NCBI GenBank assembly: GCA_020891255.1
Contig: BQFW01000001.1
Span: 2,356,001 to 2,420,000, forward strand
Reading direction: 5' to 3'
Length of the DNA stretch: 64,000 bases
Source: Entomortierella parvispora E1425
Taxonomy: Eukaryota > Fungi > Mortierellomycota
Shown: positions 1-62,137 of the stretch, one piece after another
Layout of the letters: each line of letters begins with the position of its first letter
Position numbering within the stretch: the stretch's first letter is position 1
Position numbers and translations under genes: made by a program
The notes under the pieces: generated by a model
Seen by the model: the letters and a program-made list of their open reading frames with translations, nothing else
Told to the model about the DNA's origin: nothing
The model's database searches: none

Positions 1-3000
1 AGAACAATAAATGCAAAACAAGGTTAAGTCTCTGAGTTCTCGAGTAACTGATGCAAAAGAATCCGGTTCGTACCCAAGCTTTCTGTGAACATAGCCTTGA
101 CAAGGTTAATGGCGATATCCGCTGGCAAGCCAAAGTCGATGTTATTGATGTCATTTTCTGTGTCAGCACTATCATAAAAGAATGTTGCCAAAATGTGATT
201 AGTAAAATAGTTTTTGTTCTAATTACCTGCAGCTTCAGCTCATTTGCCTCTTACCCAAGGACGCGGCGAGGTTCACACCACTCCAACAGCTGCTGAGCCA
301 TGATCGTTGGCGTGGGCATGTTGGTCTTGGAATCTTGATAGAGCTGGATGAGATGCACCAAGATGGGAACAAAAATCTCGCTCAAGATTACCTGATTCTC
401 GTGAGCAGAATGGAAGTAAACCTGCATGAAGTAGCTCAGACATTGTCGGAGGTGGTTGTTGTTGGCAGTTTCGGGATCAAAATACATTGTAATCAATGTG
501 CGCAAGATCTTATATAAAATTGGCGTGTTAGCAAACATGCATCCCGGTTCAGATCAATTCCCCAAAGGCCCTGAGGAGTACAATACCTGTGCATTCTTCA
601 ACAACTTGGTGAGCATCAACTTGGCCAATCCCTCGGCTGCAATGGCTTGCAGTTCGGGTGTCGTGCTTTCAAGGACCTTTGATAGATCCGTAATGATTCT
701 ATCCTCTGTGATGTTGGCAGCCATGTTCTTCATGCCAAACGTGAGAAGCAAGTCAAAGACAATCTAAGAGACATGTAGAGCTCAAAGTTAGTCACGGAGA
801 TCTAGAAGTAGCACACCTCAAGCCACCACGTGGCACTATACCTTTAGTGAGAGGGCATGCAGTGTGTCGTTGGCGTTGTCTGCGAATATACATGTCAAGA
901 ACAACTCCATGTTGCCTTGAGCAAGCGCTTGATCCAATGCACAAATCAGACCAAGGCATTGCAAACCGAGCTGTTGCATGACTTCCTCATGTCTTGCAAG
1001 GGCTGGAATAACCAACTCGTTTAAAAGACCATACATATACGAGTTCTCTGTGAGGGGCTAGGTGGAAAAAAAAAAGATGTCGATTAAATGCCAAACATGA
1101 TAATGGTGATCTCTCTCCTATATTCCAGTCGCACTTGCTTACCTCTTCGCTCCGTTCCAACATGAATTTTGTAATCGTCAAGCAACGGATACGAATCAAC
1201 GTTGCCTCCATTTCACTCGGTGCCTTTCCAATGTCCTCTGCAGCAACGGATGATCTTCGTCTTGATATACTGCGTTTGCGTTTCCTTGGCGTGTCGGCCA
1301 TATCCAAGGTTTGATCGTCGGGGGAATCATCGTCATCCTAACGTTGGAGGGAAATATTTAGTATCCTTCTCGTATGGCCCAATCTGTGTCTCGATCATAT
1401 CAACCTTACATCCGAGCCTTCGGGATTTCTCAGGTACTCTTGCTCATCAATACTAGTGCGAATATCAGAGATGATCTCAATGACAATACGCGTAAAATCT
1501 TTCTCGTTCAGAGAAATCTTTCCCATTGTCTCCACAATACAATCCAAATGCTTGTCAGGGATATCATCGAGCATGAGCATTTCACCTAGAAGAAACTCGT
1601 GTTGATAAGATAAATGTCCTCAGATCACCAGGGCTCTCCAGCATCTTGCACTTACGAAGAAGGTTAAACATCTTGCGTCGACCGTTTTCGTCCGCGTAGT
1701 CGAGAAGCTTGGCGATCATCAAGAGTTGAGTCACAATGAACTCGGCTTCGGGGCGGTTCTCTTCTTCAGCCTCTTGCATCATGTTGCTGTATTTTTGGAT
1801 GTAGAACGCATGTCGAGTGACCTCTGGAACGGCTTTTTCGAACTGGATGTCATCGTCCTTGCTCCTGCAAAACTCTGCATAGGCTCTGACAAGAAGCGCA
1901 CTTTCTACAGTGAGATTGAACCAAAACACATCTTTCCACGTAATGAGAAGAACGATAAGTCAGTGTCATATTATCAACTCGTCCTTATCCGCTCCGTTGC
2001 ATCAAATATTATATCCTCACCATCAAATGTGAGGTTTCCAATGATGTCTGCTCTGTAGTCAAAGAATGCTCTGAGAACGTCGTCGGCTACGTCGCTGCTC
2101 ATCACGTCGAGGCGCTGTAAGAACTCGATAAGGTTGTCATCTGCTTGCTGGATCCACTTTGTTGCTACCATTTTGGCACATGCCTTCTTTACACCCTCAT
2201 CTCTAAGATGAGGAGATCCCTGAGTGTCAGTCATATTCAAAGTAGAAGCAAAGTCCTAGAAGTCTTAGAGTCCCAAAACCAACCTGTCTGAAAGACCGTA
2301 TCGCAAAAGTCTTTCTCTCTCCCCGATCGAGAGCTTGCGAAAGTCTGAAAGTTCATCCATAGGCTTTGCAAATACACTGCGACGATTATATGGATCAATG
2401 TCCCGTGCACGCTCCAGAATGAAGGGCAATGTCTCCTTGGATTGCTCAATGTTGAAAAGCGCGGAACGGCGAACCTCGCTAGGCATCCAAGTATATACGG
2501 TTAAAACTAACATCACACGATTCTTTGTTCAGTTATTCAGCCGCAGTGATCTATACTTACGAACTCATGTCGTGTTGCATCATGTCCACAAGCTTTTGCA
2601 CCACATTGTCCTCGTTATCGCCAGACTCTTCTTCTCCTTGAAGTTTCGACAGTGCAAAGACAGCTTGAACGCGCACAGCCGACTCCTTATCCTTGACTCT
2701 TTCCATTAGACTGCTCTTGAGCTGGGTATACAGATCATCACTAAGGGATGAAAGTGCAACCGTGTTAGCCATCCAGCAACTGTCGCCAGGGCGAACGGAT
2801 TTTCAAATCAAATCAGCAAACACATACTCCATTGCTCCCAATGAGTTGGTGCTCAAAGCAATAAGCTGACAGCAGCGAAGTCGAACAAGTTTCTCCTTGA
2901 CACGAACTCCCTTCAGCAAGTGGTGCATGAGATACTCCACGAATCTTGACGAGATGCCCTCTGAGCCTTCCTCATCCTCAGTCTCAGTTCCGACCACAAT

Positions 3001-3475
3001 ATCTATTCAAACATATTTTAGTCAACTGTTGTTCATAGTCGCTCCTGTCGACAAAAAATAATAAAAAGTGAGAACCCTCACCTTTCTCTCGCGTGCAGAG
3101 AATAAAAGTGGAGACAAACTGGATAACCCTGTCTGCTACGGGGTCTTTCTTCTTGACAGCGAGGACAACATTGAGATTGCGGATGAATTCCTTGTTGAAT
3201 GCTTCCTCTCCTTGTTCTCCTGCTATTTCGGCGCATTGTTCCTGGATCTTGCGGAGCATGATGGAGTTTTTGCGATGGTTGGCGACGGTTTTTTGAGATT
3301 CCTGAAAGATGGAGGGCACTACGGTCCGCAAAGTGTCTATAGCAGTTGGCTTTTTGGGCTTTGAAGATGCTCCTTTGGGCGTGGACCTGCTGTTGGGAGC
3401 ATTGTTACCGGCGCTGCTGTCTGCTGAAGTAGAAGTAGAAGTGGCGGCCTGGGAGGCCTTTTTCGCCTTGGCCAT
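1..3475 (-). CDS. YCG1: Condensin non-SMC HEAT subunit G (CAP-G/Cnd3), multi-exon, 3' end runs off the window
   Basis: Exon ORFs give IFQESQKTVANHRKNSIMLRKIQ, LRERVKDKESAVRVQAVFALSKLQ, MWMDPSPEVRR-like segment, LQAIAAEGLAKLML, LRQCLSYF; these are typical Cnd3 motifs. GT-AG introns; ATG at 3475. Confidence 0.93.
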
Positions 3476-3780
3476 GAGGTATAGATGAAGGCCGCTGTTC
3501 CTGTGGAGAGTGGATGTGAGTGGCCCTTGTCTTTAGAGTCGAGGGATGCAGGGAGGAGAGACGGAGAGAAGAGAGGACAGCATGCACACACTCACAAGCA
3601 CACAACAAATATTCGCCAGACGCGACTCGGCGTGACCGACGAACCAACCCTTGAATCGATTTAGTGGCGGCTCAAAGCCACAGATGTCTCTCCTGCAGGG
3701 TCATCTTTGACAGACATTCATTCTCTCTTTGCACAACGCACTCGCTCACACATTCGCTCACTCAGGACAGGCACTGGACT

Positions 3781-4332
3781 ATGGATTCGAATCGATCGAC
3801 CCCCGCACGCGACCTTGGCTATTCCCCAGCACCCCAGGAGCGAGAAAGAGGCTCACGGCCACCAAAGTCCATCGGCGTATGTAGCGGTTATAATGGAGAA
3901 GCACATTCCCACAGACTCATGCTGGCCCATGCTGATGAAGTTGTCTTTGCTGACGAATGTACCTTTTGACTTGCTTTACACATGATAGGATCTTCTCAAT
4001 ACTGACCGTGAGGGATCAACGGCTTCATCTTCAGCGGGACCCACAAATCCTTTTGCAGGACTCTCCAAGGCAGAAATTGCAGAGATGCCCGTTCGACCTT
4101 ATCTGGACCAAACTGTTTTGCCTGTGCTTCTGGAGGGGATGAAACAACTGGCGAAAGAGAGGTAACAAAGTCTCCTTTGACCAGTTTGATCCGCTTTGAT
4201 ATCATCCAATATGGTCTCTGACTTGAATACTTTTTACGTCTATTTCAAATTAGACCCCAAAACCCATTGGAATATCTCGGACACTTCTTGTTGAATCACA
4301 GCGACACCGTTGGACGATCCCCTGGCCCATAA
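3781..4332 (+). CDS. DPY30: Dpy-30 / Sdc1 COMPASS subunit (3 exons)
   Basis: Spliced reading gives [39 protein letters not shown], the Dpy-30 motif; TAA at 4330-4332. Confidence 0.88.
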
Positions 4333-4557
4333 AATACCATCGCACCATTTCTCTCCAAGTCCCAGCATCATGCTGCAGCATGATCCATTCTCTGTAATAT
4401 ATTATTCGCCTGTTTCCTTTCCTCTTTCAATTCCTTTGTATGAAATGATGTTTTATTGTCAATGGAGTGAAAATGGTGTTGAGTGTTGATGAAGTGTCCG
4501 GAATCCTAGCTTCCCATAGTCCCCGGTGTATAGTCGGTTTATGTCTTTTTTCCAGAT

Positions 4558-5118
4558 TTACCACAACGCACGGCGCTTCTGACGCTGGATCACGATCTCC
4601 TGTGCCTTCCAGCCCTTCTTCTCAAAGGCCCGTTGCTGGGCCTTCAGACGGGCGACTTGGACTTCTTTTGAAGCTGGGACGTAGCACTGAACAAAAATTT
4701 CGCTGACGTTGTACTTCTTGGCGAGGTAAGAGCGGGTGTACTTGGCGGGGTTCTCGAGACGGAGGGCCTGCATCTCTGAAATCTGTTCTGGGGTCAACTT
4801 CGCGAATGTGGGGCGAGCGGCGACGGCCTTCAATGGTGGGGGGAGATCAGGATGTGAGAGAGGGGTAGTGGTAGCAGAGCCGGGTGTCCTTGAGGAGACC
4901 GAAGCAGGGGAGGGACGAGCGGAGGAGAGGATCGAGGTGGTGGGTCCGGCAGTGGGGCGACGAATGAAAATGGAGCCGTCTTCCAGAGGTGTTGCCTCGT
5001 TGCTGTTCTGGAGTTTGTGACGGAGACGGTAATGGCGGGGGAAGAGGGTGCGGGTGATGTTGGTTCCCATACCACGGGCCAATGCAGGCACGGGCATGCT
5101 CACTGTCGTCTTGAACAT
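4558..5118 (-). CDS. MRPL20: Mitochondrial ribosomal protein mL58 (MRPL20)
   Basis: Single exon: LTPEQISEMQALRLENPAKYTRSYLAKKYNVSEIFV...RRALW, matching the MRP-L20 family pattern. Confidence 0.82.
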   Translation of the reverse strand: MFKTTVSMPVPALARGMGTNITRTLFPRHYRLRHKLQNSNEATPLEDGSIFIRRPTAGPTTSILSSARPSPASVSSRTPGSATTTPLSHPDLPPPLKAVAARPTFAKLTPEQISEMQALRLENPAKYTRSYLAKKYNVSEIFVQCYVPASKEVQVARLKAQQRAFEKKGWKAQEIVIQRQKRRALW

Positions 5119-5478
5119 GGCGATGTGTATGTAAGTGTGTGTAAAGAGAAAAACGAATGCAGGAACGCAATGAATGTGAATGCAACCAACCCGATCAACC
5201 AAGGCAAGGGCTGTTTGGTTTGGTGGCTTTGAAGAGATGTGTTCACGTGATGGGTTTTGCGGCTCCTGTTGGTTGCCCTGAAAGTGGACTCAGCCCCGAG
5301 GGATTTTTGTGTTCAGACCCTCCCTTTGATTTTGATCGCCAAACTGCTCCCGAGGGAGGGCGTTGCTCACCATAAAAATAGGGTCCAAGGGTGCCCTCTG
5401 CCCCTCTCTTCTCTGCCAATCCTTTTCCCACCCACCTCCCTCCCGCACCCACATCCCACCACCCTCAGTGCCACCACG

Positions 5479-7810
5479 ATGCCGCCTGGACAGCACATTG
5501 TCAATGGCAAGAGATCCCCTCCTGGATCTACCATATTCCTGTTCCTCCTCCTGGGACTGGTCTCGCTCTGCAGTCTTCTTTCCATAGAGACCGTAGCTGC
5601 TGCACCTGCGGTGGCACAACTCCGTCCTTTAGAAGGCAAAAGACAAACGCCTTCGAAGGACCTGCATCGGGACCACTTGCTCCTGGCAGACAATGTCTTT
5701 TTGAACATTGAAGACATTCTCGACTCGCCAGAGATGGACCCATGCCAAATGTGCCTGAACGGAATGCAGGTTGCACAGACATTTTCCCGGGAAGCACCCG
5801 AGCTTGTTCCCGGTGTTCTTCGATCGCTTTGTCTTCAATATTCAATCATGAGGGCTGATTCTTGCTTGGGACTAATGGAAAGACTTGGTCCTGAGCTCGC
5901 CAGTATCTTTTCAGAAATGAATCTCGAAGGTTCAGACGGTTATTACGCCTGTGCGTACTCGTTTCCTGGATCTTGCCCTGTCCCTGTTCATGAACCTAAA
6001 CCAATTACCTTCCCCAAACCCAAGCCTGCCGACGCAAAGCAGCCTGCTCCCAGTGGCGAGGTCATTCAAGTTCTACACTTCAGCGATTGGCATCTTGACC
6101 CGTTGTACATGCCTGGTGCGGAGGCCAACTGTTCGCACTCGATGTGCTGTAGAGATTACGGACGATGGAATGACCCTGGGCCGATCAAGAAGCCCGCGTC
6201 CAAGTGGGGCGAAGCCAAGTGCGATGTTCCTATTACACTTGGTCTTAGTGCCATGGAGGCCATTACTCGCTTTGTGCCCAATGCAAGCTTTGGTTTGTTC
6301 ACGGGCGATATCGTCTCGCACGACACCTGGTTGATTACGGAAAAGTATGTGTCTGACGAAGAGACCAGGAGCTATAACATCTTCAAGAAGTATCTTCAAG
6401 ATCTCAAGCTCTATGTTGCTCTGGGAAACCACGACTCTTATCCTGCAGATCAAACCCCTGGGCGAGCCCGACCAGCGATGTATGAGACGCAACAATGGTG
6501 CGTATATCTGATTGATCCATTGACTGTTCAATTGACTCGGCTTGTGAGTGACCCTGTACTGACTCCTCTCCTCTCGACCTGTCTTGCCAACAGGCTTTAT
6601 GACCATGTGGCCAAAATTTGGGAAGAGAACGGATGGATTTCATCTGTTGAAGCCGAACACGCGCGTTCTCATAACGCCATGTTCATGACAAGACCTATGG
6701 ATGGTCTCAAGCTGATCACCTTGAACACCGATCTTTATTATGTGCGCAACTACTTTACTATGCTTGATACAGAGAAGGATGATCCTAGTGGAATGTTTCA
6801 TGATTTAATTCTGGAGTTGCAGGATAGTGAAGACCGCCAAGAAAGAGGTAAGCGCCTCTCAAGCCAGTGACGACAATGCACCATGTACTCCAAAATCTGC
6901 CTTTATAGACTCACACGCTCCCCTCAACGACTAGTGTGGATCATAGGGCACATGGCCCCTGTAACTTTATCATTATCTCGATCTTCTATTCTATTCGAGA
7001 GGATCGTTGCAAGATATTCTCCACATGTTATTGCTGGTATCTTCACAGGTCACTTTCACCTCGACAAGTTTGTGGTTGTTCATGACCCTGATGCTCCGGA
7101 GCAATCTCATGACAGTGCCATCAACGTTGTGTACGAGGGGCCGAGTATCACTCCCCTTGATAATGGCAATCCTGTAAGTTTTCAGATGGCTATCTATGGC
7201 CCGACAATAAACCGTTTGTCGGCACTAACACGCGTTGCATTTTTCTTGCCGTCCAATTTTTTTCTAGGCCATTCGATGGTATGACATAGACGCAAAAACA
7301 TTCTCAGTCGTGGACACGCACACAGTCGTAGCAGACATTATAAGTCAAGCCACTTACTGGGAGGAGCACGATCTCGAGCCTGTATGGAAGCTTGAGTACT
7401 CTGCAAAGTCCTTCTATGGCGATCCAGATGCCCCTTTGGGGCCGCATGACCCCCTGTCCCCTTCATTCTGGTACGACGCTGTGGAGAGAATGAAGGCGGA
7501 TCCCGACCTGTTCAACACGTATTGGTCATACTCGTTCAAATCATCCGCTAGGGCTAGCCCATGCCCGGAGGGTTCTGCGTGTGAGCAGCAGTCCCTCTGT
7601 CAGATGCAGGCTATTACGGTGGTCCAGTCTGATACTTGTACGGCAGAGAGTAAAGAGCAGCACCCAACGAAGAAGGACAAGCCAGAGAAGTTTGCGACAA
7701 CGCGATCAGGTCGAAAGGTCCAGGTGGATGAATACCGAGAACAGCGAGGCATCGAGGAAAATCTTCGCCGTCAACAGGCAGCTTTACACGCACGCAAATA
7801 CGATTTGTAA
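5479..7810 (+). CDS. Acid sphingomyelinase-like metallophosphoesterase with saposin-B domain
   Basis: Signal-anchor hydrophobic stretch, saposin-type Cys pattern (CQMC...C...C), and metallophosphatase motifs LHFSDWHLD, FTGDIVSHD, LGNHD, IIGHM, FTGHFH; introns near 6498-6593, 6848, 7174. Confidence 0.9.
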
Positions 7811-8147
7811 ATAAATATAGCGTATATATACCCGACGCCAAGGTCGCCGAGAAAGAGAAGAATAAAAAAAAAAGGGTGGTGGGTAAAATGTGGCTTAGAA
7901 GATAGCGCGCTTCCCCATTGATGATCGCATTGTCGCTCCTGCAGCATGCCCTGTCTGACAGTCTCCCTCATCCTTTGCTCCTTGTCTCTCTTTTTCTCGC
8001 CACACCATCCTACGAAGGACTTCAGGACCACATCCACTCTCAGACGTCCGAGATCAACTTTAGTTCAGGGACACTCAGGAATACCTCTAATTAACAGACG
8101 ACTAACGACCCGGCACCAAGGACCATTCCTCATTTACAACATCCAAC

Positions 8148-10517
8148 ATGAGCTCAAACATACCGGATGACGATGACGAGTTCCTTTATGGCGGTGCATC
8201 AGGATCTACTAAAGAAGACTCCACTCAAAAAGACAATGGTATGGGGCTGATTAGTCAATTGGAACAAGCTCATGGTTCTTATTCGAGATTTCGCGTCACC
8301 AACATCAATGTACCTTGGGCTTGACGCTTTGTCTTTTGTATCCTAGCCGTGGACAGTGAAGCGTTCGATCTTTATGGAGAAGGAGGAGAGTCTGGGTAAG
8401 CCCCATGTACTTTTCGCCTGTGGTTTTGTGCTGCCGGTCAAGTGAGTTGTGTCCTAATACAAGAGTCCATTCTTTCTTTTCATGTGAATAGATCAACAGG
8501 AGAAGGATCTGCCAGTGCCCCTCAGAAGACTAGCAGCGACTCAAAGGGCCAAGAGGGTGATGAGGCAGATGAAAATGACGAATCGGATGAAGGATCAGAA
8601 GAAGAAAGCGACTCTGTAAGTTCAGGAGGTTTGATGCATTTCTAGAAGATTGGTTCAATAGGCCAGGAGCCTCGTTGACTGACATGCAATTTTTATTCTC
8701 ATTGAACTTGTACAGGATATCGAGATTGTGATGGACGACGAAGACAGCAAACCGGACGCAGCAAAGTAAGAATCCACTTCAAGTTTTTAAATAGGGAAAA
8801 GTGATCAGTCCGCATGTCTCTAACAAAGGACGATATGAACCCATAATCTGCAGGCAAACCGTTGTAAATATCAAATCATCCACGCTGCCAGCCAAGCCTG
8901 GAACGACCACAGTCACCAATGCCAACGGAACAGTGGAAGTCATTGCGGCAACAAAGCCAGGTGCGGTCGATATTAATGCAGTTGGATCTATCGACGGCGT
9001 TGAACTTTACGACGTCGACCTGGATGGCTCTGATGATAAGCCATGGAGAAAACCAGGTGCCGATTTGACAGATTACTTTAACTATGGATTCAATGAGACG
9101 ATCTGGAGAGCATACTGCCAAAAGCAAAAGATGATGCGCGACAATCCCTTTGGCGGAAAGGTAACGGTCATTGTGAATATCAAAGGTGAACCATGGTATA
9201 TGTTCAATGATCTTTGATACTGATGGTGTTTGGGTGTTACCCGTTAGGGATTTGAGTTGGATCCCAAGATCTTGATGGACATGCCCGAGCTCGCTCTTGG
9301 TATGGCAGGAATGGCAGGAATGCCTGGCATGATGCCCGGTATGCCCGGTATGCCAATGATGCCTGGAATGCCTGGAATGGGGATGCCGGGTATGGGCATG
9401 CCCGGGATGCCGAACATGATGGGTCGCGGGATGCCCAATATGAACATGAACATGAATATGGGCAACATGATGAACCCAATGAACCAGCGCGGTGGAGCAG
9501 GAGCAGGACGTGGAGGTCGTTTCATGGGTCCTGGAGGTCCTGGAGGCCCTGGTGGACCTGGCGGACCATCGCGTCCAGATGTTGGCGGGCGCAATGACCA
9601 GAGTCCATCGTTCCCACGCAAGAATAGTGTCGGTGGACCGGATGATAACAACTCGAACGACGGACAGGGCTTCCAGTCTGGCAGCAATAACCAGCCATAC
9701 TATGGCGGGGACGGACCAGGCGGCTTTAACCAGGGTGGCTTCCGAGGAAATGCTCGAGGAGGTATGGGCAACCCAGGTGGCGCTGGACGTGGACGCGGTG
9801 GTCCTGGCATGGGCCGTGGTCAAGGCAACTTTAACCAATGGGATGGGCCATCGTTTGGAGGAGGCGGAGGAGGATTCCAAGGAGGTCGAGGATATAATCA
9901 AGGCTCAAACCCTCAGGCCCAGGGCTTCCCAGGACAGCCAGGACCCGTTAAAGCTCTAAATGATCGGGATGACCGGGACGATCGTCGCAGCCGCAGCCCT
10001 ACCAGCAACGACCGTGATCAACGTGAATCTCGTGAAAGTGGACGAGGCGATCGTGGACGTGACCAAAGCCGAGACCGCGGCACGCGCGATCGCGAACGCC
10101 AGGGAGATCGCGACAGCAGCCGAGTTTCAAGTAGAGATGGCAGTGGTCGAGGCAGCAGTCGCGAGAGGGGCTCAAGGGGCGATAGAGACCGGGACCGTGA
10201 CCACCATAGATCAGACAGGGACCGATCCGAGCGATACGATCGGTCAGACCGATCAGACGACCGCCGAAGTGGCGCCACCAAGGACAGGAGCCAGTCTGAG
10301 AAGGACAAGGTAATGCACCGATGTAGCGTCTGCGCTAGTCTTGAGTCGTGGTTGATTTTTTTGTTAGCTCTGCATCCCTTTTTTTAATGCCTCGTTTTCC
10401 GCTTCTTGTGTTTGTGTTTGTGATTAGGAGCGATGGGACCGCGAGGATGAGATGAGTCGGAAGAGAGGCGCGAGCTCGACTCCTCGGGACGACGAGCGGA
10501 AACGCGGACGGTACTAG
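8148..10517 (+). CDS. FIP1: Pre-mRNA polyadenylation factor Fip1
   Basis: [31 protein letters not shown] Fip1 motif, acidic N-terminus, GMPGM and RD/RS-rich C-terminus; last exon ends RKRGRY-TAG at 10517. Confidence 0.93.
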
Positions 10518-10719
10518 GTTTCTGCGTGGCCTCGATTTGTAGAAAAGAAATACAGAAAAAAAAAGAAACAAACTTTTTGCGAGAGACCCACAGAGAGGGA
10601 GGGGAGGAATGCATGTTTGTGTTCTTTGTCTGTGTGTGTTGAGTGGTGTGTCCAAGTGGTGCTTTGTGCCCTCGTCTGCTTTGCTTTGCTTGTCTGCCTC
10701 TTTTCTTTCTTTCCTTCCT

Positions 10720-10722
<3 letters not shown>

Positions 10723-10757
<35 letters not shown>
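10723..10757. repeat. (CT)n microsatellite
   Basis: Perfect CT dinucleotide run upstream of the P5B ATPase ATG. Confidence 0.95.
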
Positions 10758-10759
<2 letters not shown>

Positions 10760-10904
10760 CCCCCCTTCCACTGCGACCCCTTCTCTCCACTCACTCAGCT
10801 ACCTTGTCTGACCCACCGACCCTGCCCTTCCTCCCTCTTCACCCTCACCCACCGCTAGCAAACGAAAATACTCGCTTCAACACGGAGAGACCCTCGGCTG
10901 TTTA

Positions 10905-13900
10905 ATGGTCCACGCCCCATCCCATGACCCCCTCTCGCCCCGATTGCTCGACCAGGACAATGTTGATTCTATAAACCCAGCTGCTTCTTCTGCAGGGAGT
11001 GCCTTGTCTCGGAACCGTGCCTCCTCCACCGCGACTGTCGCCACCCTGACCTTTGAGCCCGCACCACAACCCTCATCTCCGACTTTGCCCTCTCTTGAAC
11101 ACCACCAGCGATTCAGCTACCCTCGAACAGTCGACTCGAACCGTGCTCATCCCTCAAAGTCCTTCTCATTCAACTCGATTTCAACGCGTGATGACGATGA
11201 GGAAGAGGACGAAGAAGACGAGGAAGAAGACGACGAGGACGTTGGAGACGAGTCCCAACCTATTTTGACCGCAGCAGCACCTGGACGGGCCAAACTTGGC
11301 AAGAAGCCTACATTTCTCGGTGAGTTTGCTTATTGATAACCACGGGGTGGAATGGAGTTGAATGGAGGTCTTTCCAACCGCATCTGACGGTGCACCATGA
11401 AGGTTTGGTTGGTTTGGTTTGGTTTGGTTTGGTTGGTCGGTTAGCTGAGTTGTTCCAGCCCCCCTGATCAGCCAGTTTGCCCAAGGCTGGACGCAGCCCT
11501 GGGTAAAAACCCAGAAAAAACCCCCCTACCAGAGCCCAGGGCATAGGAATCACACACTGACTTTTTTTTTTTTTTTTTTTTTTTGGCTCTGGTCATACAG
11601 GAAGGTCGACGTACGAGAATAGCCGCAGCATACAACATGTGCACCTGGAAGAGGAGGATGTTGAGCTGACCCTAAGCGGATACTGCTTTGTCCAATCACG
11701 TATCTACATGTACTATCTGGCCTGTTTGCTCAGTGGAGGGATCGTCTTTTTGTTGGCGCGCTGGATGCCTCAACGGTACATCATGTTCGTGGCACGATCC
11801 TGCGACATGGGCGATGCTGAGGCGGTGGTAGTCGAGGTAAGCATATGGGACGGGACGGGAAGGAAAATAGGAGGACTCCTTGAGGCGTGTGAACCACGAG
11901 AGTCGATCGATATTCTGGTACTCAGGTGTTTGGGGCTCTGGACGAAGGATGCTCGGCTAATATGATAATCATATATTTGTCTCCTCTGCGTAGAATGGAT
12001 ATGGACAACTGGAAACCCACACCGTGTTCACAAAGTACTATGGAGGGCCCATTGACTCGGTCTTCAGTCGTGCTCAACTGAGCCAGGATCATGGATATGG
12101 CGAATTGCAAGATGTAGATGCCATGGTAAACTGTTGCTTGCAAAAATCATCTGTAGTAGCAATGGTCCAAGACAATACCTAAACGCATTTACCTTTACTT
12201 ACGTCCTAACTTCTTTTTTACATTTTATAGTCGTCGGGCATGCTGCATGATATGCGCTATATTGACTATCAGTACATTCGCTTCATTTTCAACCCAGTCA
12301 CCCAAACATTTATGCAAAACTCATCATGGAAGGACCCGGAATGGTCAACAGTCGCCAATTGTGAGCGGGGACTGGGAAGAGAGAGTCATCAGGAGCGCAC
12401 CATGGTCTTTGGTCAGAATGTGATCGATGTGCAGGAAAAGACTGCTGGGCAATTGTTGGTTCAGGAGGTGCTGCATCCATTCTATATCTTCCAGGTCTTT
12501 TCAATGGCTCTTTGGTTCGCCGACGATTACTACTACTATGCAGCGTGCATCTTTGTCATCTCCACAGTCTCTGTTTTTACCGAGCTAATTGAGACCAAGA
12601 AGACCATGAGGCGAATGAGGAACATGTCAAAGTTTACCTGCAACACAAGAGTTTTCCGCTCTGGGCTTTGTACGTATCTTCAACAAGACATCGTGGCATG
12701 AGATTATTATTTCCTAATTCTAACTAATTGCTTCCTTCCTCTGTTCATGATGTTTATAGGGCGCATCATTGGCTCGGAGGAATTGGTGCCTGGAGATGTT
12801 TTTGAGATCACAGACTCCGGACTCGCTGTATTTCCGTGCGATGCTGTCCTGTTGACAGGAGACTGCATTGTAAACGAGAGCATGCTGACCGGGGAATCTA
12901 TTCCTGTCTCCAAGGTCCCCGTGACAGACAAGGTCCTGCAACTCTTGGATCTCTCCCTCGCCAATATACCCGCAGATCTCGCTCGTCATTTCCTTTTCTC
13001 TGGCACAAAAATCGTCCGAGCGCGACCTGGAACAGCCAACTCAAAGAGACGCCTCAGCGCCGAAGATTCTGAATATGGAATGAGGCAACCCATGCGTGGA
13101 CTTGCCATGGTAGTAAGGACAGGATTCAACACCACCAAAGGCAACCTAGTTCGTTCCATGCTTTTCCCGAAACCAAATGACTTTCAGTTCTATCGGGATT
13201 CTTTCCGGTTCATTGGAATCTTGGCCTGCATTGCTTTCTGCGGTTTCTTGGTCTCCACTGTCAACTTTATCAGGATCGGCGTGCCCTTCCGTCTCATGTT
13301 TATCAAAGCATTGGATCTGATCACCATTGTCGTACCACCAGCGCTGCCTGCCACCATGTCCATTGGAACCAGCTTTGCTATTGCACGTCTCAAGCGAAAC
13401 AGCATCTTTTGCATTAGTCCGACTAGAGTCAACATTGGAGGAAAGATCAACTGCATGTGCTTTGACAAGACAGGAACCCTTACAGAGGAAGGTCTTGATG
13501 TGCTCGGAGTACAGTGTGGAGACAGCGAGAATGGAAACTTCGGACCTTTAATTCAGAAAATCGAGGAAGTACAGTCTGCGCCAGAGTCGATGATTGAAAA
13601 GAGCACCTCTCTTGTTCATGCAATGACTACCTGTCATTCTGTAAAATCTTTGAACGGCGAGCTCATTGGCGATCCATTGGACCTTAAAATGCTTGAGTTC
13701 ACGCGTTGGATCCTGGAGGAGGGTGGGCTCGGAGCGAGAACCTCCAGTGTTTCGGAAACGGCCCACAATCGAGCTCAAGGAAATGGAGGTGGCATTGTAT
13801 CAACAGTTGTTCGACCCCCAGGTACAAAGCAGTTCAATTTAGACGACGTGCTTTCACATCATCCTTCGGAAATGATTGGATCGGTAAGCGAGCAAACAAG

Positions 13901-35015: not shown

Positions 35016-35229
35016 TGACAGGGTCGCTGACACCCACCCACGATGGCGTATCGGGACGGCACAGACAGGTTGTGCAATTGCAAAAGCATTTTATTCCCTT
35101 GGGTGAAGCAGGTGCATGATACTTACAATTGGCAGGAAATAAACCACACGCCTGCCAGGGACCAGAAAAAAAGAATGCGGTGACACACCAGGACATCAGG
35201 ACAAATTAATAAAAGAAAAAAAAAAGAAA

Positions 35230-35315
35230 GGATGTGGAGGGTGTCGAACCCATCAAGCAAGCCCAATGAGGACCCGTATTGTTCCAAAGAAAATAGTTGA
35301 AGTTGCTACACATCC
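35230..35315 (-). ncRNA. Putative Pol III small RNA, copy A (86 nt)
   Basis: GGATGTG...CACATCC terminal stem, TAGC after the stem, B-box GGTTCGACACC, followed by TTTC-T10. Confidence 0.5.
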
Positions 35316-35667
35316 GTGAAGGTTTTTTTGAACCTCACTTGATAAACCGTTCTTTGGAGGCGTAGTCGCCTTTTTTTTTTTGGTGGCGTAAAATTTCATG
35401 GCAGCCTAGAAACCCTTGACCTCATGTCTTCACATAGACCAAGCAGCTCTCTTGTGGGTGCAGGGTTTGTTGCCTGTTGATCGTAAGTACAAACCACTCT
35501 TTCACTCTCTTTCTCCACCCAAGGGAAGCTAATTAATGCAGACAAAGCGAATCCATCGCCAGATTCAGGAAAGGGATTCAGAAATTTCACGCCACCAAAA
35601 AAAAAAAAAAAGGCGACTACGCCTCCAAAAGAACGGTTTATCAAGTGAGGTTCAAAAAAACCTTCAC

Positions 35668-35753
35668 GGATGTGTAGCAACTTCAACTATTTTCTTTGGA
35701 ACAATATGGGTCCTCATTGGGCTTGCTTGATAGGTTCGACACCCTCCACATCC
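35668..35753 (+). ncRNA. Putative Pol III small RNA, copy B (86 nt)
   Basis: GGATGTG-TAGCAACTTCAA...GGTTCGACACC-CTC-CACATCC followed by TTTC-T15. Confidence 0.5.
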
Positions 35754-35863
35754 TTTCTTTTTTTTTTTTTTTGGGCAAATGACAAAACAATTGACTTCGC
35801 CTCCAGAAATCTGTCTGCGGCTGGAGTAGCATTCAAGGGCCTTTCTGTAAAAAAACACCTGGT

Positions 35864-35959: not shown

Positions 35960-36070
35960 TTTTCTTTTTTTTTTTGTTGTCTCGTTGTTGTCTCGCCGGT
36001 TTTCATTCAAAACCTCTTGTATGTCACAAACTACCTGTGCTCCAGGTCTGCCCTCCCATGTTCCTGTTGC

Positions 36071-36083
36071 TCCCTCTCCCTCT

Positions 36084-36138
<55 letters not shown>
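36071..36138. repeat. (CT)n microsatellite
   Basis: Perfect CT run at about 36094-36138, preceded by CCCTCT variants. Confidence 0.95.
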
Positions 36139-36141
<3 letters not shown>

Positions 36142-36374
36142 AACTCCTCGATAGTCATCAGCTCTGGTGCCTCCTTCTGTAATGTCGAACTCTTGAGAGT
36201 GTCGACCACCAGATTCTAATAAGTATGCGAAATAGTCACGTGTGGAAGGTTTGACATAACTGATGCGGTACTCCAGGATTTTTTGAGCGACCCTCCTAGT
36301 TGCGAGCTTTTTCGTCTTTTTTTTTTCTTTCTTCACCCTACACCCACAACACCCATCCATTGCTCTCCATTCTC

Positions 36375-53999: not shown

Positions 54000-54839
54000 A
54001 TGAGTGACATTGACGACGACGACTACACCCCCCAGCTCTCTGCCGCCACTTTGGCGGTCCTCCAGCAGCACATGAGGGAGCAGACTGAGCAGCAGGAGCG
54101 TTTCGAAAAGTTGCGCCAGCTGGCCGAAGAAAAGTTTGACGCCGTCAACGCCGAGGAGGTGGACGAGAAGATCACTATGGAATACTTCACAGAGGACTGG
54201 CAGATGAGTCAGTTCTGGTACGACGATGAGACAGCAGGCAAGCTCGCGTCCGAGATCTTTGAGCAGGCCTCGGAGAGCGATGTTGTCTGCTGTATTAGTT
54301 CGCCCACCGCCTATGTCACAGCCATGGTAGGAACATTGGACAAGAAAAAACATCAGAGCAACTATGAAGATTTAGTCCATTGAAGCTTCATCTCTAACTC
54401 CCCTCATGATTTTTCCCCAACAACGCAATTTCACTCGAATCAGGCTGATGACAGGGCAAAGGGTCGTAAGAACAACATGTTCCTGTTTGAGTTTGACACC
54501 CGTTTCGATGTCTATGGCCGTCAATTTATTCATTACGACTACAACAAGCCTACCGACTTTAGACTGGCCACGGAGCTCGAGGGAAAGGTTGATATGATCG
54601 TGGTCGACCCACCTTTCTTGAGCGAGGAGTGCTTGGAGAAGACCCTGGACACGGTCAAGTACCTGTTGAAGCCCAATGGCAAGTTGATCCTCTGCACGGG
54701 ATTGGTCATGGCGAAGCTTGCTACTACCCGTATGCCTGGCCTCAAGATCACCGATTTCCACCCCGGCCACCGAAATGGACTTTCGAACGACTTCAGATGC
54801 TATGCCAACTATGATTCCAAGCGCTGGACAAGACAATAA
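54000..54839 (+). CDS. EFM5: eEF1A lysine methyltransferase 1 (N6AMT2/Efm5)
   Basis: LSAATLAVLQ, EDWQMSQFWY, LFEFDTRF, DPPFLSEEC, HRNGLSNDFRCYANY. Confidence 0.92.
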
Positions 54840-54959
54840 ACATACCGCATTCTTCACATTTTTTTTTCAGTCGTAAGATCTTTTTGTTGAAGGATAGAAG
54901 AGAGTCATGGTAGAAAAGATGTAAGGGCTGATAGGCATTAAGCAGCAAGCGGCCAATGT

Positions 54960-57900
54960 ATTGTAATGGACCATGCAGAAGTTCCGTTTGAACTTGGATG
55001 TTCGATTGTTTTTATTTCTTCTATTTGAAAAAAAGGAGCTATAATGATCTGCGGTCGGTCAAATATCTTCTCTCATGGCAAACGTGAAGCCTCTCTTGCT
55101 CACACTCGACTTTGATGTGATGCCTGGTGCATGGTCTGCTCTGATTCGGTTTCGCTGTGTTGTCTGCTCGAGTGAGGCTGCCGATACGTGGTCCACTAGG
55201 GTTCTGCTTCTGTGCATGGTCTTCTTGTTTCTGAGATCCTCGCTTGGGCCAAAAGATCCCGCTGAGAGCAGAAGGAAGACCCACCCGCCATCCCTAACCT
55301 CCTCCGCCTCAGCCAACTGTTTTTGCATTGTCATGGCCGCCGGATCAAATCATCCAGTAGCCGCCCAGAGTCCCTGCCCAAAATGAGTTAAGAGGTGAGT
55401 AGTCCATAGTACAAAGTCAATCATCAGTCAAATAGCAAGCATTCAGACAGTTGCTGCTCTTGCTCCACTCAATCCCAACAATCATAGACAAACACCACGC
55501 TGCACTTCCTGTTGCCAGGATTGACGCAAGAAGTCTAGAGGAGTTTCACTGCTTCCGGTCCCAGAAGAACAAGAGACAGATTCAGACCCACAGCTCATAG
55601 TCCGCCTTTCGAAATCTGCACAAAATGCCGAAATAAATGACAGAGAGCTTTGCTGGGTTCTAGATCAACACACTTTCTATCCCCAAGGAAGGCGCCTTCA
55701 CGATCTAGAGGGGTAAAGACCACGTTTCACTTCCCAAACTCCCCAACGGAAAGACGTGAGATCTTTAAAGTCATCTTGACAAGAAGTTGCCGATTTCTGT
55801 TGCCAGAGCTCAGCAACCCAAACTGCCAAAAGGACTTTGAAAAAAAAAAATGTATCCACGGTCCTGTTGAAGGACTGGGTGGAAGAGGGAGTGCGCGCAA
55901 CCATATATACGCTTCGATCGCTGACACGGTCATCCAGTGCCAGAAAAGGGCTGCTAGTATATGGGTGTATGATACGACGCTTCGATCTTCGAGGCGGTAA
56001 TCCTGCTGCATCATACGGTTGTTAGCCCACGTTCAGGTTTGGGAGTGCAAACGCAGGACTAAAATGGTATTGCCAATAGGCGCCCTGTTGCCAGGGCACG
56101 TCTCGGCTCGACCAACCGAGACGATCGATTTAACCGTTGCCGGAAAGAGTTGCTACGTTGGTCCTTGTGTGCAGGAGACTAGGGCCTAGGGTAGCCGGAG
56201 TCCTCCTCAATCTAACTACGGGTCCTAGGAGTGCACCACGATTTCGAAGGTATGAGGCTGGTTCCATAAAGGATTCATCTCAGGGACCCTCTCAACTCCT
56301 TGTAATTATCGCCAGAACGGCTAAGCCCCCAACACCTTCCGTGATGAATGACAGCCACAAAGAGGGGGAACCAAGGGCATCTCAAGAGACACCCAAGGCA
56401 GCGTGAACAGAAACGGACACGCGGAGTTTGATAGCCACAGCGCGAAACATACATGGACTATAATGGGATAAAAAAAAAAAGGGCCCACCATGCTTTGCCA
56501 GGACACGACGGCACAGCTCGCAAGCCTCCAGTCCTTCTTTTGGATTCTGTCACCAGAAAACGGCAGTTGAACCACAAGCTGCAAATCACGCTTCTGTTCC
56601 TTGTTGCCAGGGCAAGAAACATGAAATCCCCTTCATCCTCTCACCAAAACTGAATCTGATGAAGAGATGAAAGAAAGAAAAGGGATGGAAGAGCAAGAGA
56701 GAGACACACCCACACCAATACTTAACTTGTGTACCAGAAACCACCACAGAGCGGCGCTACGCAACAGGGGCCAGCGATGCGAGAGAGTCTGCAGAGCGTT
56801 CAGTGAGAAAAGGGAACTTGTGAGAATGCATGGAAGATGACCAGCCAACATACACAAAAGGCAACAAACACGAAAGCAAAAAAAAGAGCCATAACTTACC
56901 AGAGAGAGCCACCCGCAAGCACACCATACATGTCCAGGACAGATGGATCGAGGCCACGACCAAGGCAACCACTATTTCCAAGGAAAAGCAAATACAAGGA
57001 ATAGAGAGAAATGAGTCAACACTGAGCTGGCGGGCGCAGTCGACATTGACGCGTGAGAGAAAATGTCGAAATGAAAGCCGGTCATTAAAGCATGAGAAGC
57101 AAAAAAAAAAAAGAGAGACAGAGTGAAAGGAATGGTGGTTGTGAACCAAGGACATACAAGAACGAAACAACAGAGAGGAGCAAAGTTGGAGTGTGGGTTG
57201 TTCAAGGAGAGGCACTTACCAGTCAGGCTACCATGGAGAGAAAAGGCGGAAAGAGCGACGAGAAAAGCCAAGCCCGAGCGATGTATATGTATGAATCACA
57301 TATGGACCCCTTAAAAATCGACAATCATTCCCTGCTCGAATCCACCCCCCAACGAGTTCAGCTGGCTGGATGCACTCCTCAAGGGCTATCAGGGGAGTGC
57401 ACGCACCCATTCAACAGCTATCAAAGAACTCGGAGAACAAAAAGTTTATAAAATGACTAGGAGGAGCTTGCCGCCCAAGCGAGTCAGTGCTCGTGTGCGT
57501 TGCACACGAGAGCACAGCACACGCGCGTTTTACAAAAAACCTAATTGACATTTAAGCATGCCCCTGAACCCCTGGCACATCTTTTTGAGTGTCGGACTAA
57601 CATCCCTTGCGTGCCACCCTCTTCTTCACTCACACTTCCAACGTACATGTACAATGCTGATTAGCAACAGGCACAAAAGATCGAACACTCTCAACTGCCG
57701 CTCCTGGGCATGGTCCAACTCCCGGTTCGCCAGCTTGGCCCTGCTGAGGTTTCAGCTCTCAAAGGCGCCTCAAAGTCTCCAAGAGTCTGCCTGTCTGACA
57801 GGAAGACTCCCTCCATGAAGTTCAAACCTGGCGCTTATTACTTATCATACTTCAATGGTGTTTTGTCCTCCCAAGTGAAAGGTCTCTTCTCGAGTACCGT

Positions 57901-60447
57901 CATCAATCAATAAAAGTTCTGCGACAAGCACAGCTCTCCACAGCCTGAAGAATCCAACCGTCGAGAATTCCTCTTCTCCACACTCAAAGGCACACCCACC
58001 ACTGACCGTGCATTTGGACTCTGTTGAGGAGTGAATCCAGCCAACTGAACACGTTGGGGGGTGGATTCGAGCAGGGAATGATTGTCGATTTTTAAGGGGT
58101 CCATATGTGATTCATATATATACATCGCTCGGGCTTGGCTTTTTTCGTCGCTCTTTCCGCCTTTTCTCTCCATGGTAGCCTGACTGGTAAGTGCCTCTCC
58201 TTGAACAACCCACACTCCAACTTTGCTCCTCTCTGTTGTTTCGTTCTTGTATGTCCTTGGTTCACAACCACCATTCCTTTCACTCTGTCTCTCTTTTTTT
58301 TTTTTGCTTCTCATGCTTTAATGACCGGCTTTCATTTCGACATTTTCTCTCACGCGTCAATGTCGACTGCGCCCGCCAGCTCAGTGTTGACTCATTTCTC
58401 TCTATTCCTTGTATTTGCTTTTCCTTGGAAATAGTGGTTGCCTTGGTCGTGGCCTCGATCCATCTGTCCTGGACATGTATGGTGTGCTTGCGGGTGGCTC
58501 TCTCTGGTAAGTTATGGCTCTTTTTTTTGCTTTCGTGTTTGTTGCCTTTTGTGTATGTTGGCTGGTCATCTTCCATGCATTCTCACAAGTTCCCTTTTCT
58601 CACTGAACGCTCTGCAGACTCTCTCGCATCGCTGGCCCCTGTTGCGTAGCGCCGCTCTGTGGTGGTTTCTGGTACACAAGTTAAGTATTGGTGTGGGTGT
58701 GTCTCTCTCTTGCTCTTCCATCCCTTTTCTTTCTTTCATCTCTTCATCAGATTCAGTTTTGGTGAGAGGATGAAGGGGATTTCATGTTTCTTGCCCTGGC
58801 AACAAGGAACAGAAGCGTGATTTGCAGCTTGTGGTTCAACTGCCGTTTTCTGGTGACAGAATCCAAAAGAAGGACTGGAGGCTTGCGAGCTGTGCCGTCG
58901 TGTCCTGGCAAAGCATGGTGGGCCCTTTTTTTTTTATCCCATTATAGTCCATGTATGTTTCGCGCTGTGGCTATCAAACTCCGCGTGTCCGTTTCTGTTC
59001 ACGCTGCCTTGGGTGTCTCTTGAGATGCCCTTGGTTCCCCCTCTTTGTGGCTGTCATTCATCACGGAAGGTGTTGGGGGCTTAGCCGTTCTGGCGATAAT
59101 TACAAGGAGTTGAGAGGGTCCCTGAGATGAATCCTTTATGGAACCAGCCTCATACCTTCGAAATCGTGGTGCACTCCTAGGACCCGTAGTTAGATTGAGG
59201 AGGACTCCGGCTACCCTAGGCCCTAGTCTCCTGCACACAAGGACCAACGTAGCAACTCTTTCCGGCAACGGTTAAATCGATCGTCTCGGTTGGTCGAGCC
59301 GAGACGTGCCCTGGCAACAGGGCGCCTATTGGCAATACCATTTTAGTCCTGCGTTTGCACTCCCAAACCTGAACGTGGGCTAACAACCGTATGATGCAGC
59401 AGGATTACCGCCTCGAAGATCGAAGCGTCGTATCATACACCCATATACTAGCAGCCCTTTTCTGGCACTGGATGACCGTGTCAGCGATCGAAGCGTATAT
59501 ATGGTTGCGCGCACTCCCTCTTCCACCCACTCCTTCAACAGGACCGTGGATACATTTTTTTTTTTCAAAGTCCTTTTGGCAGTTTGGGTTGCTGAGCTCT
59601 GGCAACAGAAATCGGCAACTTGTTCTTGTCAAGATGACTTTAAAGATCTCACGTCTTTCCGTTGGGGAGTTTGGGAAGTGAAACGTGGTCTTTACCCCTC
59701 TAGATCGTGAAGGCGCCTTCCTTGGGGATAGAAAGTGTGTTGATCTAGAACCCAGCAAAGCTCTCTGTCATTTATTTCGGCATTTTGTGCAGATTTCGAA
59801 ATGCGGACTATGAGCTGTGGGTCTGAATCTGTCTCTTGTTCTTCTGGGACCGGAAGCAGTGAGACTCCTCTAGACTTCTTGCGTCAATCCTGGCAACAGG
59901 AAGTGCAGCGTGGTGTTTGTCTATGATTGTTGGGATTGAGTGGAGCAAGAGCAGCAACTGTCTGAATGCTTGCTATTTGACTGATGATTGACTTTGTACT
60001 ATGGACTACTCACCTCTTAACTCATTTTGGGCAGGGACTCTGGGCGGCTACTGGATGATTTGATCCGGCGGCCATGACAATGCAAGAACAGTTGGCTGAG
60101 GCGGAGGAGGTTAGGGATGGCGGGTGGGTCTTCCTTCTGCTCTCAGCGGGATCTTTTGGCCCAAGCGAGGATCTCAGAAACAAGAAGACCATGCACAGAA
60201 GCAGAACCCTAGTGGATCACATATCGGCAGCCTCACTCGAGCAGACAACACAGCGAAACCGAATCAGAGCAGACCATGCACCAGGCATCACATCAAAGTC
60301 GAGTGTGAGCAAGAGAGGCTTCACGTTTGCCATGAGAGAAGATATTTGACCGACCGCAGATCATTATAGCTCCTTTTTTCAAATAGAAGAAATAAAAACA
60401 ATCGAACATCCAAGTTCAAACGGAACTTTTGCATGGTCCATTACAAT
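54960..60447. repeat. Large inverted duplication: arms 54960-57382 and 58024-60447, 641-bp unique spacer
   Basis: Arms are reverse complements; about 15 differences found by eye in about 2.42 kb. The ORF track shows mirror-image ORFs in the two arms. Confidence 0.97.
58113..60447 (+). ncRNA. Putative spliced long non-coding (or micro-ORF) transcription unit; mirror copy on the - strand at about 54960-57293
   Basis: TATA-like CATATATATAC at 58113; GTAAGT donors at 58187 and 58507 with AG acceptors at 58434 and 58617; further branch/acceptor signals (GCTAAC 59379, CTTAAC 60016); AATAAA at 60391; no family-like ORF. Confidence 0.4.
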
Positions 60448-60642: not shown

Positions 60643-61458
60643 TTATGTGTAGGTCAGCACCTTCTCCCGAATCTCCTGATCCCACCCGTACTTCCAGAGA
60701 GTCGATCCCTCGGCCCAATTTTTCTCCACCTCTCCAAACCCAAGCCTGTCAATCTCCTCCAGGCACCCTGCCATAATCAGATTCAGAGTCCCATGCAACA
60801 CGGCCTTGAACGGTGACAACCCTTCAAAGTCATCCAAGATCGTCTGTAAACCAGGGCCCAGATAGTTGCTGTACAGGTCTGTGTCATCCCCAGTGTCTAA
60901 CTTGGACCTCAACCCCGCCTCCACTTTGGTCGAGATCCTTTTTTTGATTAGGGGTAGGAAATGACAGATCGATGGTGGCTCACCGCAGATGTAATTTGTC
61001 TCATGACAATCCGTCATCGTCCAAAGGAGGCCGTCCCCACCGTCACCTGTGCCCCTATGGTTGGGCGCCGCGAACTTTGGTAGGACACGTTCTGGTGGGA
61101 TATTCTCGACACAATTTCCTGTAAAATTAGGCTCGTCCTTGAAGATGGCCTCGAATGCTTTTCCGGACAGATCCACGTCCCATGCATTTTGAGCCCTCGT
61201 CACGGATTCTTGAAGGATCTGAATCGCTTCTTGCAACTGGGTTTGGGTGATGGCCATTTCCAAGGGCAGGTCCTGAAAGAGCATGGATCCGATGTTGGTC
61301 CGAAGGAGATCAAAGTAGTGGCTGGACACGATCTGGTACTTGTCTGCAAAGACATGAGGTACCTCTCTTTGGCATTGTCTGTCGCAGGCCAAGGTCAAAC
61401 CCGGTAAAGAGCACAGAGGGAGGAGGAAGAAAGGGAGGACCAGAAGAAGACGGGCCAT
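60643..61458 (-). CDS. Secreted Cys-rich hypothetical protein (intronless)
   Basis: MARLLLVLPFFLLPLCSLPGLTLA signal peptide, then CDRQCQREV..FADKY and CHETNYICGEPPSICHF. Confidence 0.78.
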   Translation of the reverse strand: MARLLLVLPFFLLPLCSLPGLTLACDRQCQREVPHVFADKYQIVSSHYFDLLRTNIGSMLFQDLPLEMAITQTQLQEAIQILQESVTRAQNAWDVDLSGKAFEAIFKDEPNFTGNCVENIPPERVLPKFAAPNHRGTGDGGDGLLWTMTDCHETNYICGEPPSICHFLPLIKKRISTKVEAGLRSKLDTGDDTDLYSNYLGPGLQTILDDFEGLSPFKAVLHGTLNLIMAGCLEEIDRLGFGEVEKNWAEGSTLWKYGWDQEIREKVLTYT

Positions 61459-62137
61459 TTGGATCATTGAGGGAGAAAGGAATAGGGGAGAAGGCAAGGT
61501 ACCTCTCTCAAATAAAAAATAAGGTCTCTTTGTTTGTTTTCTTGTTTGTGTAGATGCTGTTGTACCGGGGGTGTAACTGTTGTTCAGCAAGACAGTGTGT
61601 CCAACAAGTCGTTAGCATCTCAGGCATGCCATTTCCACAAAAAGACAAATGAGCCTCGCAATGCATCATGAACTTACGGAAAGGGAAGGGTTTTTTTGTG
61701 AGAGAGGGAATGTAAAGATGCAGGGGTGAAAGGAAGAGGTGATGAGAGGCTCTTATGGCCAGGGTATCTTGCAACGATGCGATGAATGAGGAAAGAAATG
61801 CAGGAATGGAAGGAAGAGATGGATTCGATCAGTTCAAAGGGTCTCCTCTCGTTTTCTTTTGATGCAAAAGGTTAGGGCGTTGTCTCTCTTTTCTCTGGGC
61901 CTGATTGCTGTGCCACAGAATTGCCTGCCACTGCGCCCATTTCCGCCACGAGCAGAGACAAGTGGACAGAGTTTCGCCCTTCCTTCCTCCTTTTCAATTG
62001 CATCCAACCAAGTTTAATCCCTCTGCTCATCCTGAACATCCACCTATATCAAAAGCCTGTATTTATTTCCTAGCAGGAAAAAATGAGTCGTACATCGTTC
62101 TCTTTTCTCCACTGCCTATTCATCTCCTTTTCCACCT

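Follow-up and report, generated by a model that had tools for sequence, protein, structure and literature searches.

A palindrome with 2.4-kb arms in Entomortierella parvispora holds two copies of an expressed non-coding RNA gene that are probably homogenised by conversion

The arm identity of palindromes on the primate Y and X chromosomes has been attributed to intrachromosomal conversion (PMC3723533, PMC8327919), and long inverted repeats of Caenorhabditis, which contain divergent or convergent gene pairs, were reported, from a comparison of genomes, to be actively maintained (PMC1803023). In the present study, we analysed a palindrome of the fungus Entomortierella parvispora E1425, located within a 64-kb stretch of contig BQFW01000001.1 (assembly GCA_020891255.1; the whole stretch is hereafter called the window). 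Our results suggest, with a probability of roughly 0.6, that it represents a head-to-head inverted duplication with one non-coding RNA (ncRNA) gene in each arm, the two copies being kept alike by conversion. The palindrome is a known kind of structure, and the RNA family inside it is the undescribed part.

The fungal locus resembles the Y and X palindromes in having inverted arms more than 99% identical, a unique spacer and expressed genes within the arms (PMC3723533, PMC8327919). It departs from them in its much shorter arms (2.4 kb), fungal host and ncRNA cargo, in that no link to sex chromosomes is shown, and in that the case for conversion comes from the pattern of differences rather than from population data. 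With the Caenorhabditis repeats it shares the kilobase scale, the near-perfect identity and the homologous gene pair (PMC1803023), whereas the kingdom is different, the pair is non-coding and the comparison consists of one other strain represented by short contigs.

A repeat search recovered the arms as four collinear inverted blocks, split only by indels, at exactly the coordinates given in an earlier note made from the sequence alone:

54960-57382, minus strand: left arm, 2423 nt, with a promoter-like inner part and one non-coding transcription unit; DNA depth about 2.5 times that of the flank
57383-58023, no strand: spacer, unique, 641 nt, without RNA and without a domain
58024-60447, plus strand: right arm, 2424 nt, mirror copy of the left arm

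A global alignment between the left arm and the reverse-complemented right arm yielded 99.5% substitution identity and 15 difference events, namely 12 substitutions (8 transitions and 4 transversions) and 3 indels (1 nt each in A-runs at 55028 and 56470, and 3 nt at 55784). Three of the differences (57355, 57362 and 57372) fall within the innermost 28 bp. The count made by eye in the earlier note (about 15, including two 1-nt homopolymer indels, one 3-nt indel and three innermost changes) agrees with this alignment, and further statements of that note proved accurate as well: there is no target-site duplication (TSD) between the flanks ..GGCCAATGT and CGCCTGCTA.. of the palindrome and no recognisable transposase; the convergent neighbouring genes, both annotated, have their stop codons 121 and 196 bp from the outer ends (120-200 bp in the note); and in a plus-strand hairpin 6 of the 8 transitions would pair as G-U, which is not significant. 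No further copy of the arm and no internal arm repeat above chance were detected in the window, and the spacer has no match elsewhere in it. The locus consists of two inverted arms longer than 1 kb and at least 99% identical on either side of a unique spacer, and it is real in the genome, as the read evidence attests.

An imperfect hairpin at 57363-57409 (16 nt, 81% complementary, 15-nt loop) spans the boundary between the left arm and the spacer; at the seed length used, such pairs are common by chance. The spacer itself contains an imperfect GC-rich hairpin at 57489-57526 (GCTCGTGTGCGTTGC / GCACAGCACACGCGC).

For the E1425 assembly, SMARTdenovo was run on Nanopore reads and the result was polished by means of Nanopolish and Pilon; the Illumina DNA and TruSeq RNA libraries derive from the same cured line as the assembly (PMC8759367). 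As read evidence we used Logan contigs of three public runs placed on positions 54000-58250, which extend from the left flank through the left arm and the spacer to the first 227 nt of the right arm: X1, the Illumina DNA run of the strain itself; X2, an RNA run from the strain's library; and X3, a separate sample under the same organism label, which shows 41 differences over 844 flank positions (4.9% in the flanking gene). A 12.3-kb X1 contig runs from the left flank to 55008, that is, 48 nt into the arm, and a 682-nt X1 contig corresponding to 57400-58081 covers the spacer, the junction and the start of the right arm. The flank and the spacer have X1 word depths of 76.5 and 76.1, respectively, and exact arm contigs reach 184-213, a pattern of 1x / 2.5x / 1x for flank, arm and spacer. 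Since Illumina contigs cross two junctions and the depth follows this pattern, a fold-back chimera or a haplotype mis-join, either of which the earlier note had regarded as fatal to its interpretation, is excluded for practical purposes.

The arms are transcribed. That X2 represents RNA follows from its contig of the neighbouring methyltransferase gene, which skips 54326-54442 (117 nt) with GT..AG ends. On the left arm, X2 contigs cover 55029-55281, 55291-55419, 55439-55709, 55968-56247, 56300-56478 and 56495-56710 at a depth of about 200-300, compared with 26 at the neighbouring gene. They are collinear with the genome over 55029-56710, with no GT..AG joint inside the arms. The X2 depth is zero over 56840-58250 (inner arm, spacer and start of the right arm), a result that contigs cannot turn into proof of absence; the library was made with a TruSeq RNA kit and is of the mRNA type, poly(A) selection being assumed from the kit. 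Each arm is thus represented by an unspliced non-coding transcript of about 1.8 kb, and its inner 540 nt as well as the spacer are without stable RNA. The corresponding features are as follows:

54994-56839, minus strand (probable): transcribed segment of the left arm, covered by genome-collinear RNA contigs at a depth of about 200-300
58567-60413, plus strand: transcribed part of the right arm, the mirror image, with coordinates obtained via the arm alignment
55011-55016, minus strand: AATAAA, about 50 bp within the outer edge; the last covered depth bin begins at 54994
60391-60396, plus strand: mirror copy of AATAAA in the right arm
56840-57382, minus strand: inner arm, RNA-free, pyrimidine-rich on the minus strand; putative promoter and upstream region

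Transcription of the arms probably proceeds outward from the centre, with a putative promoter in the inner arm. Three features argue for this strand: AATAAA lies near the outer limit of coverage, the untranscribed inner arm is pyrimidine-rich on the minus strand (A+G make up 64% of 56711-57382 on the plus strand), and both 3' ends would then converge on the 3' ends of the neighbouring genes (121 and 196 bp). With both arms transcribed outward, the two RNAs would be identical rather than complementary. A multi-intron transcript was considered and rejected, given the collinearity of the RNA over 55029-56710, the lack of a GT..AG joint and the lack of RNA over GTAAGT at about 56897 and 57215.

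The transcript has no credible open reading frame (ORF) and the arm unit is non-coding. The annotation leaves the 5.8 kb between the two neighbouring genes empty, although AUGUSTUS was given RNA hints. None of the ORFs in the arm and spacer exceeds 152 aa; 14 of them gave no significant match in Pfam, and no transposase, recombinase or reverse transcriptase domain was found among the arm and spacer ORFs. A 95-aa ORF on the likely sense strand has no homologue among 5.8 billion proteins, and an ESM Atlas look-up of a spurious 116-aa ORF returned nothing useful. Known RNA families did not account for the transcript either, with only chance-level matches to the Rfam 15 covariance models (best E 0.083, far below the gathering score) and a blank tRNA search by ARAGORN.

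Two specific RNA classes were tried and dropped. For a small nucleolar RNA (snoRNA) host or cluster, GTGATGA at 56341 is the sole perfect C box and is by eye not kept in the two homologues described below, and Rfam is blank, no systematic box scan having been made. For telomerase RNA, the only template-like 8-mer is CCCTAACC at 55292 on the plus strand, with about 0.1 chance matches expected; this candidate was abandoned because the family is multi-copy and has highly expressed paralogs.

The two homologues were reached through the spurious 116-aa ORF, which in a phmmer search matched a 67-aa hypothetical protein; the contigs encoding this protein and its cluster mate, from two JGI soil metagenomes (L007 and L008), turned out to be DNA homologues of the arm from 55316 to about 56480 (66% identity, E about 1e-78). 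They are 86% identical to each other, and their divergence is unevenly distributed: 2-4% over the part matching arm positions 55495-56110 and 8-18% on either side of it. The alignment of the arm with both contigs consists of near-invariant blocks of 12-95 nt amid variable stretches with indels of 1, 2, 5 and 7 nt. Such indels also occur within the conserved part, and the substitutions are spread over the codon positions as 41/28/29, so that a protein-coding signature is lacking. Low divergence together with the lack of codon periodicity marks a core of about 600 nt as constrained and non-coding:

55495-56110, minus strand: conserved non-coding core of the left arm, about 600 nt, homologous to L007 and L008 and located at the RNA depth peak contributed by diverged paralogs
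59295-59913, plus strand: counterpart of the core in the right arm

Relative to L007, positions 30-250 of L008 contain a tandem duplication of about 110 nt, which falls at the end of the family unit where conservation is lower.

Within E1425, the family extends beyond the two arms. In X1, the depth of parts of the arm corresponds to 3 to 12 copy-equivalents; many of the contigs are 90-99% alike, and rearranged joints occur in some of them. A variant contig at 56277 and 56299 has a depth of 73.8, equivalent to one copy, beside about 140 for the two arms, which points to a third family copy that is about 98.5% identical. In the RNA, the alleles of this third copy make up 165/262 of the depth at 56277/56299. 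Between 55420 and 55987, the summed X2 depth reaches 1300-12350 and is contributed by short contigs that align to this interval only, hence by diverged and very highly expressed paralogs. The family is absent from the databases and literature searched. A family profile (nhmmer) retrieved no further copy from the window or from the fetched loci, a metagenome scan with an arm 21-mer gave one chance match, the conserved two-block pattern had no match in the bacterial genomes and viral contigs scanned, and no publication on palindromes or long non-coding RNAs was found for Mortierellaceae.

A motif, YCTGTTGCCAGR, occurs four times on one strand of each arm and, on the probable RNA strand, would form a short stem capped by a GCAA loop. 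Its copies in the left arm are:

55507-55520, minus strand: hairpin CCUG-GCAA-CAGG with a GNRA loop; L007 and L008 have UCUG-GCAA-CAGA, in which the closing C-G pair is replaced by U-A
56081-56098, minus strand: hairpin GCCCUG-GCAA-CAGGGC, kept in L007 and L008 with a different G+C stem
55796-55807 and 56600-56613, minus strand: the other copies of the GCAA motif

RNAalifold applied to the three sequences gave a consensus energy of -127 kcal/mol on the minus strand, against -107 +/- 7 in column shuffles (z about -3), and z of about -2.5 on the plus strand. In the same alignment, there are 13 compensatory pairs, compared with 8.4 +/- 2.6 in shuffles, whereas folding of the transcribed region as a single sequence reached z of -1.3 to -2.2 only. 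These predictions are suggestive of a structured core RNA. A degenerate 288-nt tandem repeat, raised by the spacing of GTTGCC, was discarded, its local alignments being no better than shuffles. RFX-type DNA sites were a further candidate for the GTTGCC motif; in favour of the hairpin, there are two compensatory changes.

The differences between the arms are far from evenly spread. When the two homopolymer indels are left out, 8 differences lie in the first 916 nt and 5 in the last 121 nt, and these 13 leave a difference-free stretch of 1387 nt (55876-57261; P = 2.6e-4). Constraint on the RNA does not explain this stretch, because positions 56715-57015 within it are poorly conserved, giving no alignment at 90% between strains. 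Furthermore, at 55386, 55500, 55533, 55676 and 56277, both arms carry one allele and the third copy and/or X3 carry the other, which is also the allele of the outgroup contigs. The interior of the arms is therefore homogenised, their edges have diverged, and the two arms have derived alleles in common, as expected of a conversion footprint. Beyond the outer edges, 47 nt align mirror-wise right at the boundary, with a score of 16 that is near the top 1% of shuffles, a weak signal. In X3, a 1x contig matches the left flank as well as the arm and leaves the intervening 130 nt unaligned, and the arm contigs are collapsed at about 2.7 times the depth of the X3 flank.

Given the concentration of differences near the arm edges and the derived alleles common to the two arms, we consider the palindrome to be probably an older duplication, the interior of which has been repeatedly homogenised by arm-to-arm conversion, a process deduced from the pattern of differences. 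The earlier note had proposed a head-to-head gene duplication homogenised in this way; that proposal is supported, with indirect evidence for conversion (the edge clustering, the shared derived alleles and the weak mirror similarity past the outer edges) and with one change, the duplicated gene being one for an ncRNA, not for a protein. Under this scenario, each 2.4-kb arm would hold one complete non-coding gene, in which an upstream region rich in pyrimidines adjoins the spacer, the unspliced transcript (about 1.8 kb) is directed outward and AATAAA lies near the outer edge. The arms would be transcribed separately into the same RNA and would thus function as a two-copy gene rather than as a hairpin, and intrachromosomal conversion would repeatedly overwrite the middle of the arms while the edges escape and drift.

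Several observations weigh against this scenario. The RNA assigned to the arms mostly carries the alleles of the third copy, so the arms are expressed and are not the main source of the RNA. The support for RNA structure comes from three sequences, two of them close to each other, and lacks strand specificity; in L008, one of the conserved hairpins is disrupted. All read evidence rests on Logan contigs, which lose strand information, drop variants and break at repeats. Some of the arm differences may be Nanopore or Pilon polishing errors, as at 55322 and the 3-nt indel, where one Illumina allele is present at full depth. The inverted arrangement in X3 is not proven, and part of the junction evidence there might derive from the third copy. 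Finally, a merely young duplication would also give near-identical arms with shared derived alleles.

The best surviving alternative, to which we concede a modest chance, is indeed a young inverted duplication without ongoing conversion, in which a recent fold-back or template-switch event copied a member of the family and the differences are new mutations and assembly errors. The identity of 99.5% and the derived alleles common to both arms would follow naturally; both 1-nt indels are in A-runs, as expected of a Nanopore assembly, and several sites of arm differences (55322, 55783 and 56470) have a single allele in Illumina contigs at full depth. The site also varies between species; nothing resembling the arms was found in E. 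lignicola, in Gryganskiella or in the closest metagenomic relative. Such an origin is harder to reconcile with the clustering at the edges (P = 2.6e-4; the last 121 nt contain 5 differences, a stretch of 1387 nt contains none), with the weak mirror similarity extending about 47 nt past the outer edge, and with X3, which is about 5% diverged and nevertheless has a contig joining flank and arm and a similar copy excess of about 2.7x. Because the inverted arrangement in X3 is not proven, the young duplication keeps its share.

Slightly less probable is a palindromic repeat element, foldback-like or a mosaic of dispersed non-coding repeats, which would spread or be copied as one unit and the RNA of which would reflect repeat transcription. 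Foldback transposons have a TSD and tandem subrepeats in the arms as defining features; the E. parvispora locus is similar to them in its long inverted arms, short middle and existence as a copy without a transposase. The 3 to 12 copy-equivalents of arm parts, the contigs 90-99% alike with rearranged joints and the third near-identical copy at 1x depth speak for such an element. In contrast to foldback elements, the locus has no TSD and no tandem arm subrepeats, its ORFs lack transposase and recombinase domains, and its spacer matches no termini. The family copies appear to differ in their ends: in X1 the depth of the outermost 175 nt of the arms is no more than 2x, and other copies run about 170 nt into the spacer past the inner end (depth 186 versus 76 over 57408-57549), so that the ends of the arms are probably not common to other copies, in keeping with the low rank given to a foldback element in the earlier note. 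The same depth profile gives a hint that the original extent was the left arm together with the first part of the spacer, the right arm being a shorter copy. The constraint on the core between L007 and L008 would also be unusual for inert repeats. A DIRS-like element or a DNA element with terminal inverted repeats (TIR) was rejected as well, since no domain was detected and no segment of the spacer matches the arm termini.

RNA interference has been studied in Mucor and other early-diverging fungi, and hairpin-RNA loci, which yield endogenous small interfering RNAs (endo-siRNAs) in animals, plants and fungi, likewise comprise a long inverted repeat with a short spacer that could fold into double-stranded RNA. 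The earlier note had accordingly listed a long endogenous hairpin-RNA locus, in which read-through from arm to spacer to arm would generate 2.4 kb of double-stranded RNA to be diced into small RNAs. We regard this as improbable. The geometry permits it, and a precursor that is diced rapidly might escape an mRNA-type library; yet the RNA depth is zero over 56840-58250, with no arm-spacer-arm transcript seen, each arm has its own AATAAA at the outer end, pointing outward, and the wobble bias of 6/8 is not significant. An assembly artefact, whether a fold-back chimera or a mis-joined haplotype, could be suspected because the assembly was made from Nanopore reads only and polished with short reads, and it is negligible in view of the Illumina contigs passing the left outer and right inner junctions, the 1x / 2.5x / 1x depth, the unique 641-bp spacer, the two distinct gene-bearing flanks and the X3 contig that joins the same flank to the arm.

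The palindrome is bordered by two genes that point toward it:

54000-54839, plus strand: N6-adenine methyltransferase gene (left neighbour), with the intron 54326-54442 confirmed by an RNA contig
60643-61284, minus strand: secreted-protein gene (right neighbour), annotated in the assembly as a protein of 213 aa and found only in Mortierellaceae

The gene order on the left (43-54.8 kb) is common to E. lignicola and Gryganskiella cystojenkinii, and that on the right (60.6-63.1 kb) to Gryganskiella and the closer metagenomic relative. At the position of the palindrome itself, where these three have no arm-like DNA, E. lignicola has the methyltransferase gene followed 155 bp on by an Arf gene, and unrelated DNA follows the secreted-protein gene in Gryganskiella and in the closer metagenomic relative. 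The palindrome thus sits at the meeting point of two conserved gene blocks, a spot that differs in every species compared. The ORF of the right neighbour (60643-61590), with a signal-peptide-like start, is longer than the annotated 213 aa, and its homologues are without a Pfam domain. Elsewhere in the window, there is a second, small palindrome (35211-35355 / 35628-35772) with 145-nt arms that are 98% complementary and a 272-nt spacer, and long CT-rich microsatellite tracts are located at 10679-10788 and 36038-36161.

Collectively, these results show that 5.8 kb annotated as empty is transcribed. The cargo of the arms is an unannotated, expressed ncRNA family with a constrained core, present in soil metagenomes and absent from Rfam. 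We tentatively raise the broader possibility, clearly less secure than the reading of the locus itself, that it belongs to an undescribed family of structured and abundant ncRNAs of Mortierella-like soil fungi, whose core of about 600 nt would be strongly constrained and bear several hairpins with GCAA caps, with several genomic copies, some of which would be among the most highly expressed RNAs of the mycelium, and that conversion keeps two working copies. If the transcript is a functional structured RNA, the locus would provide a two-copy gene ready for knockout in a culturable fungus.

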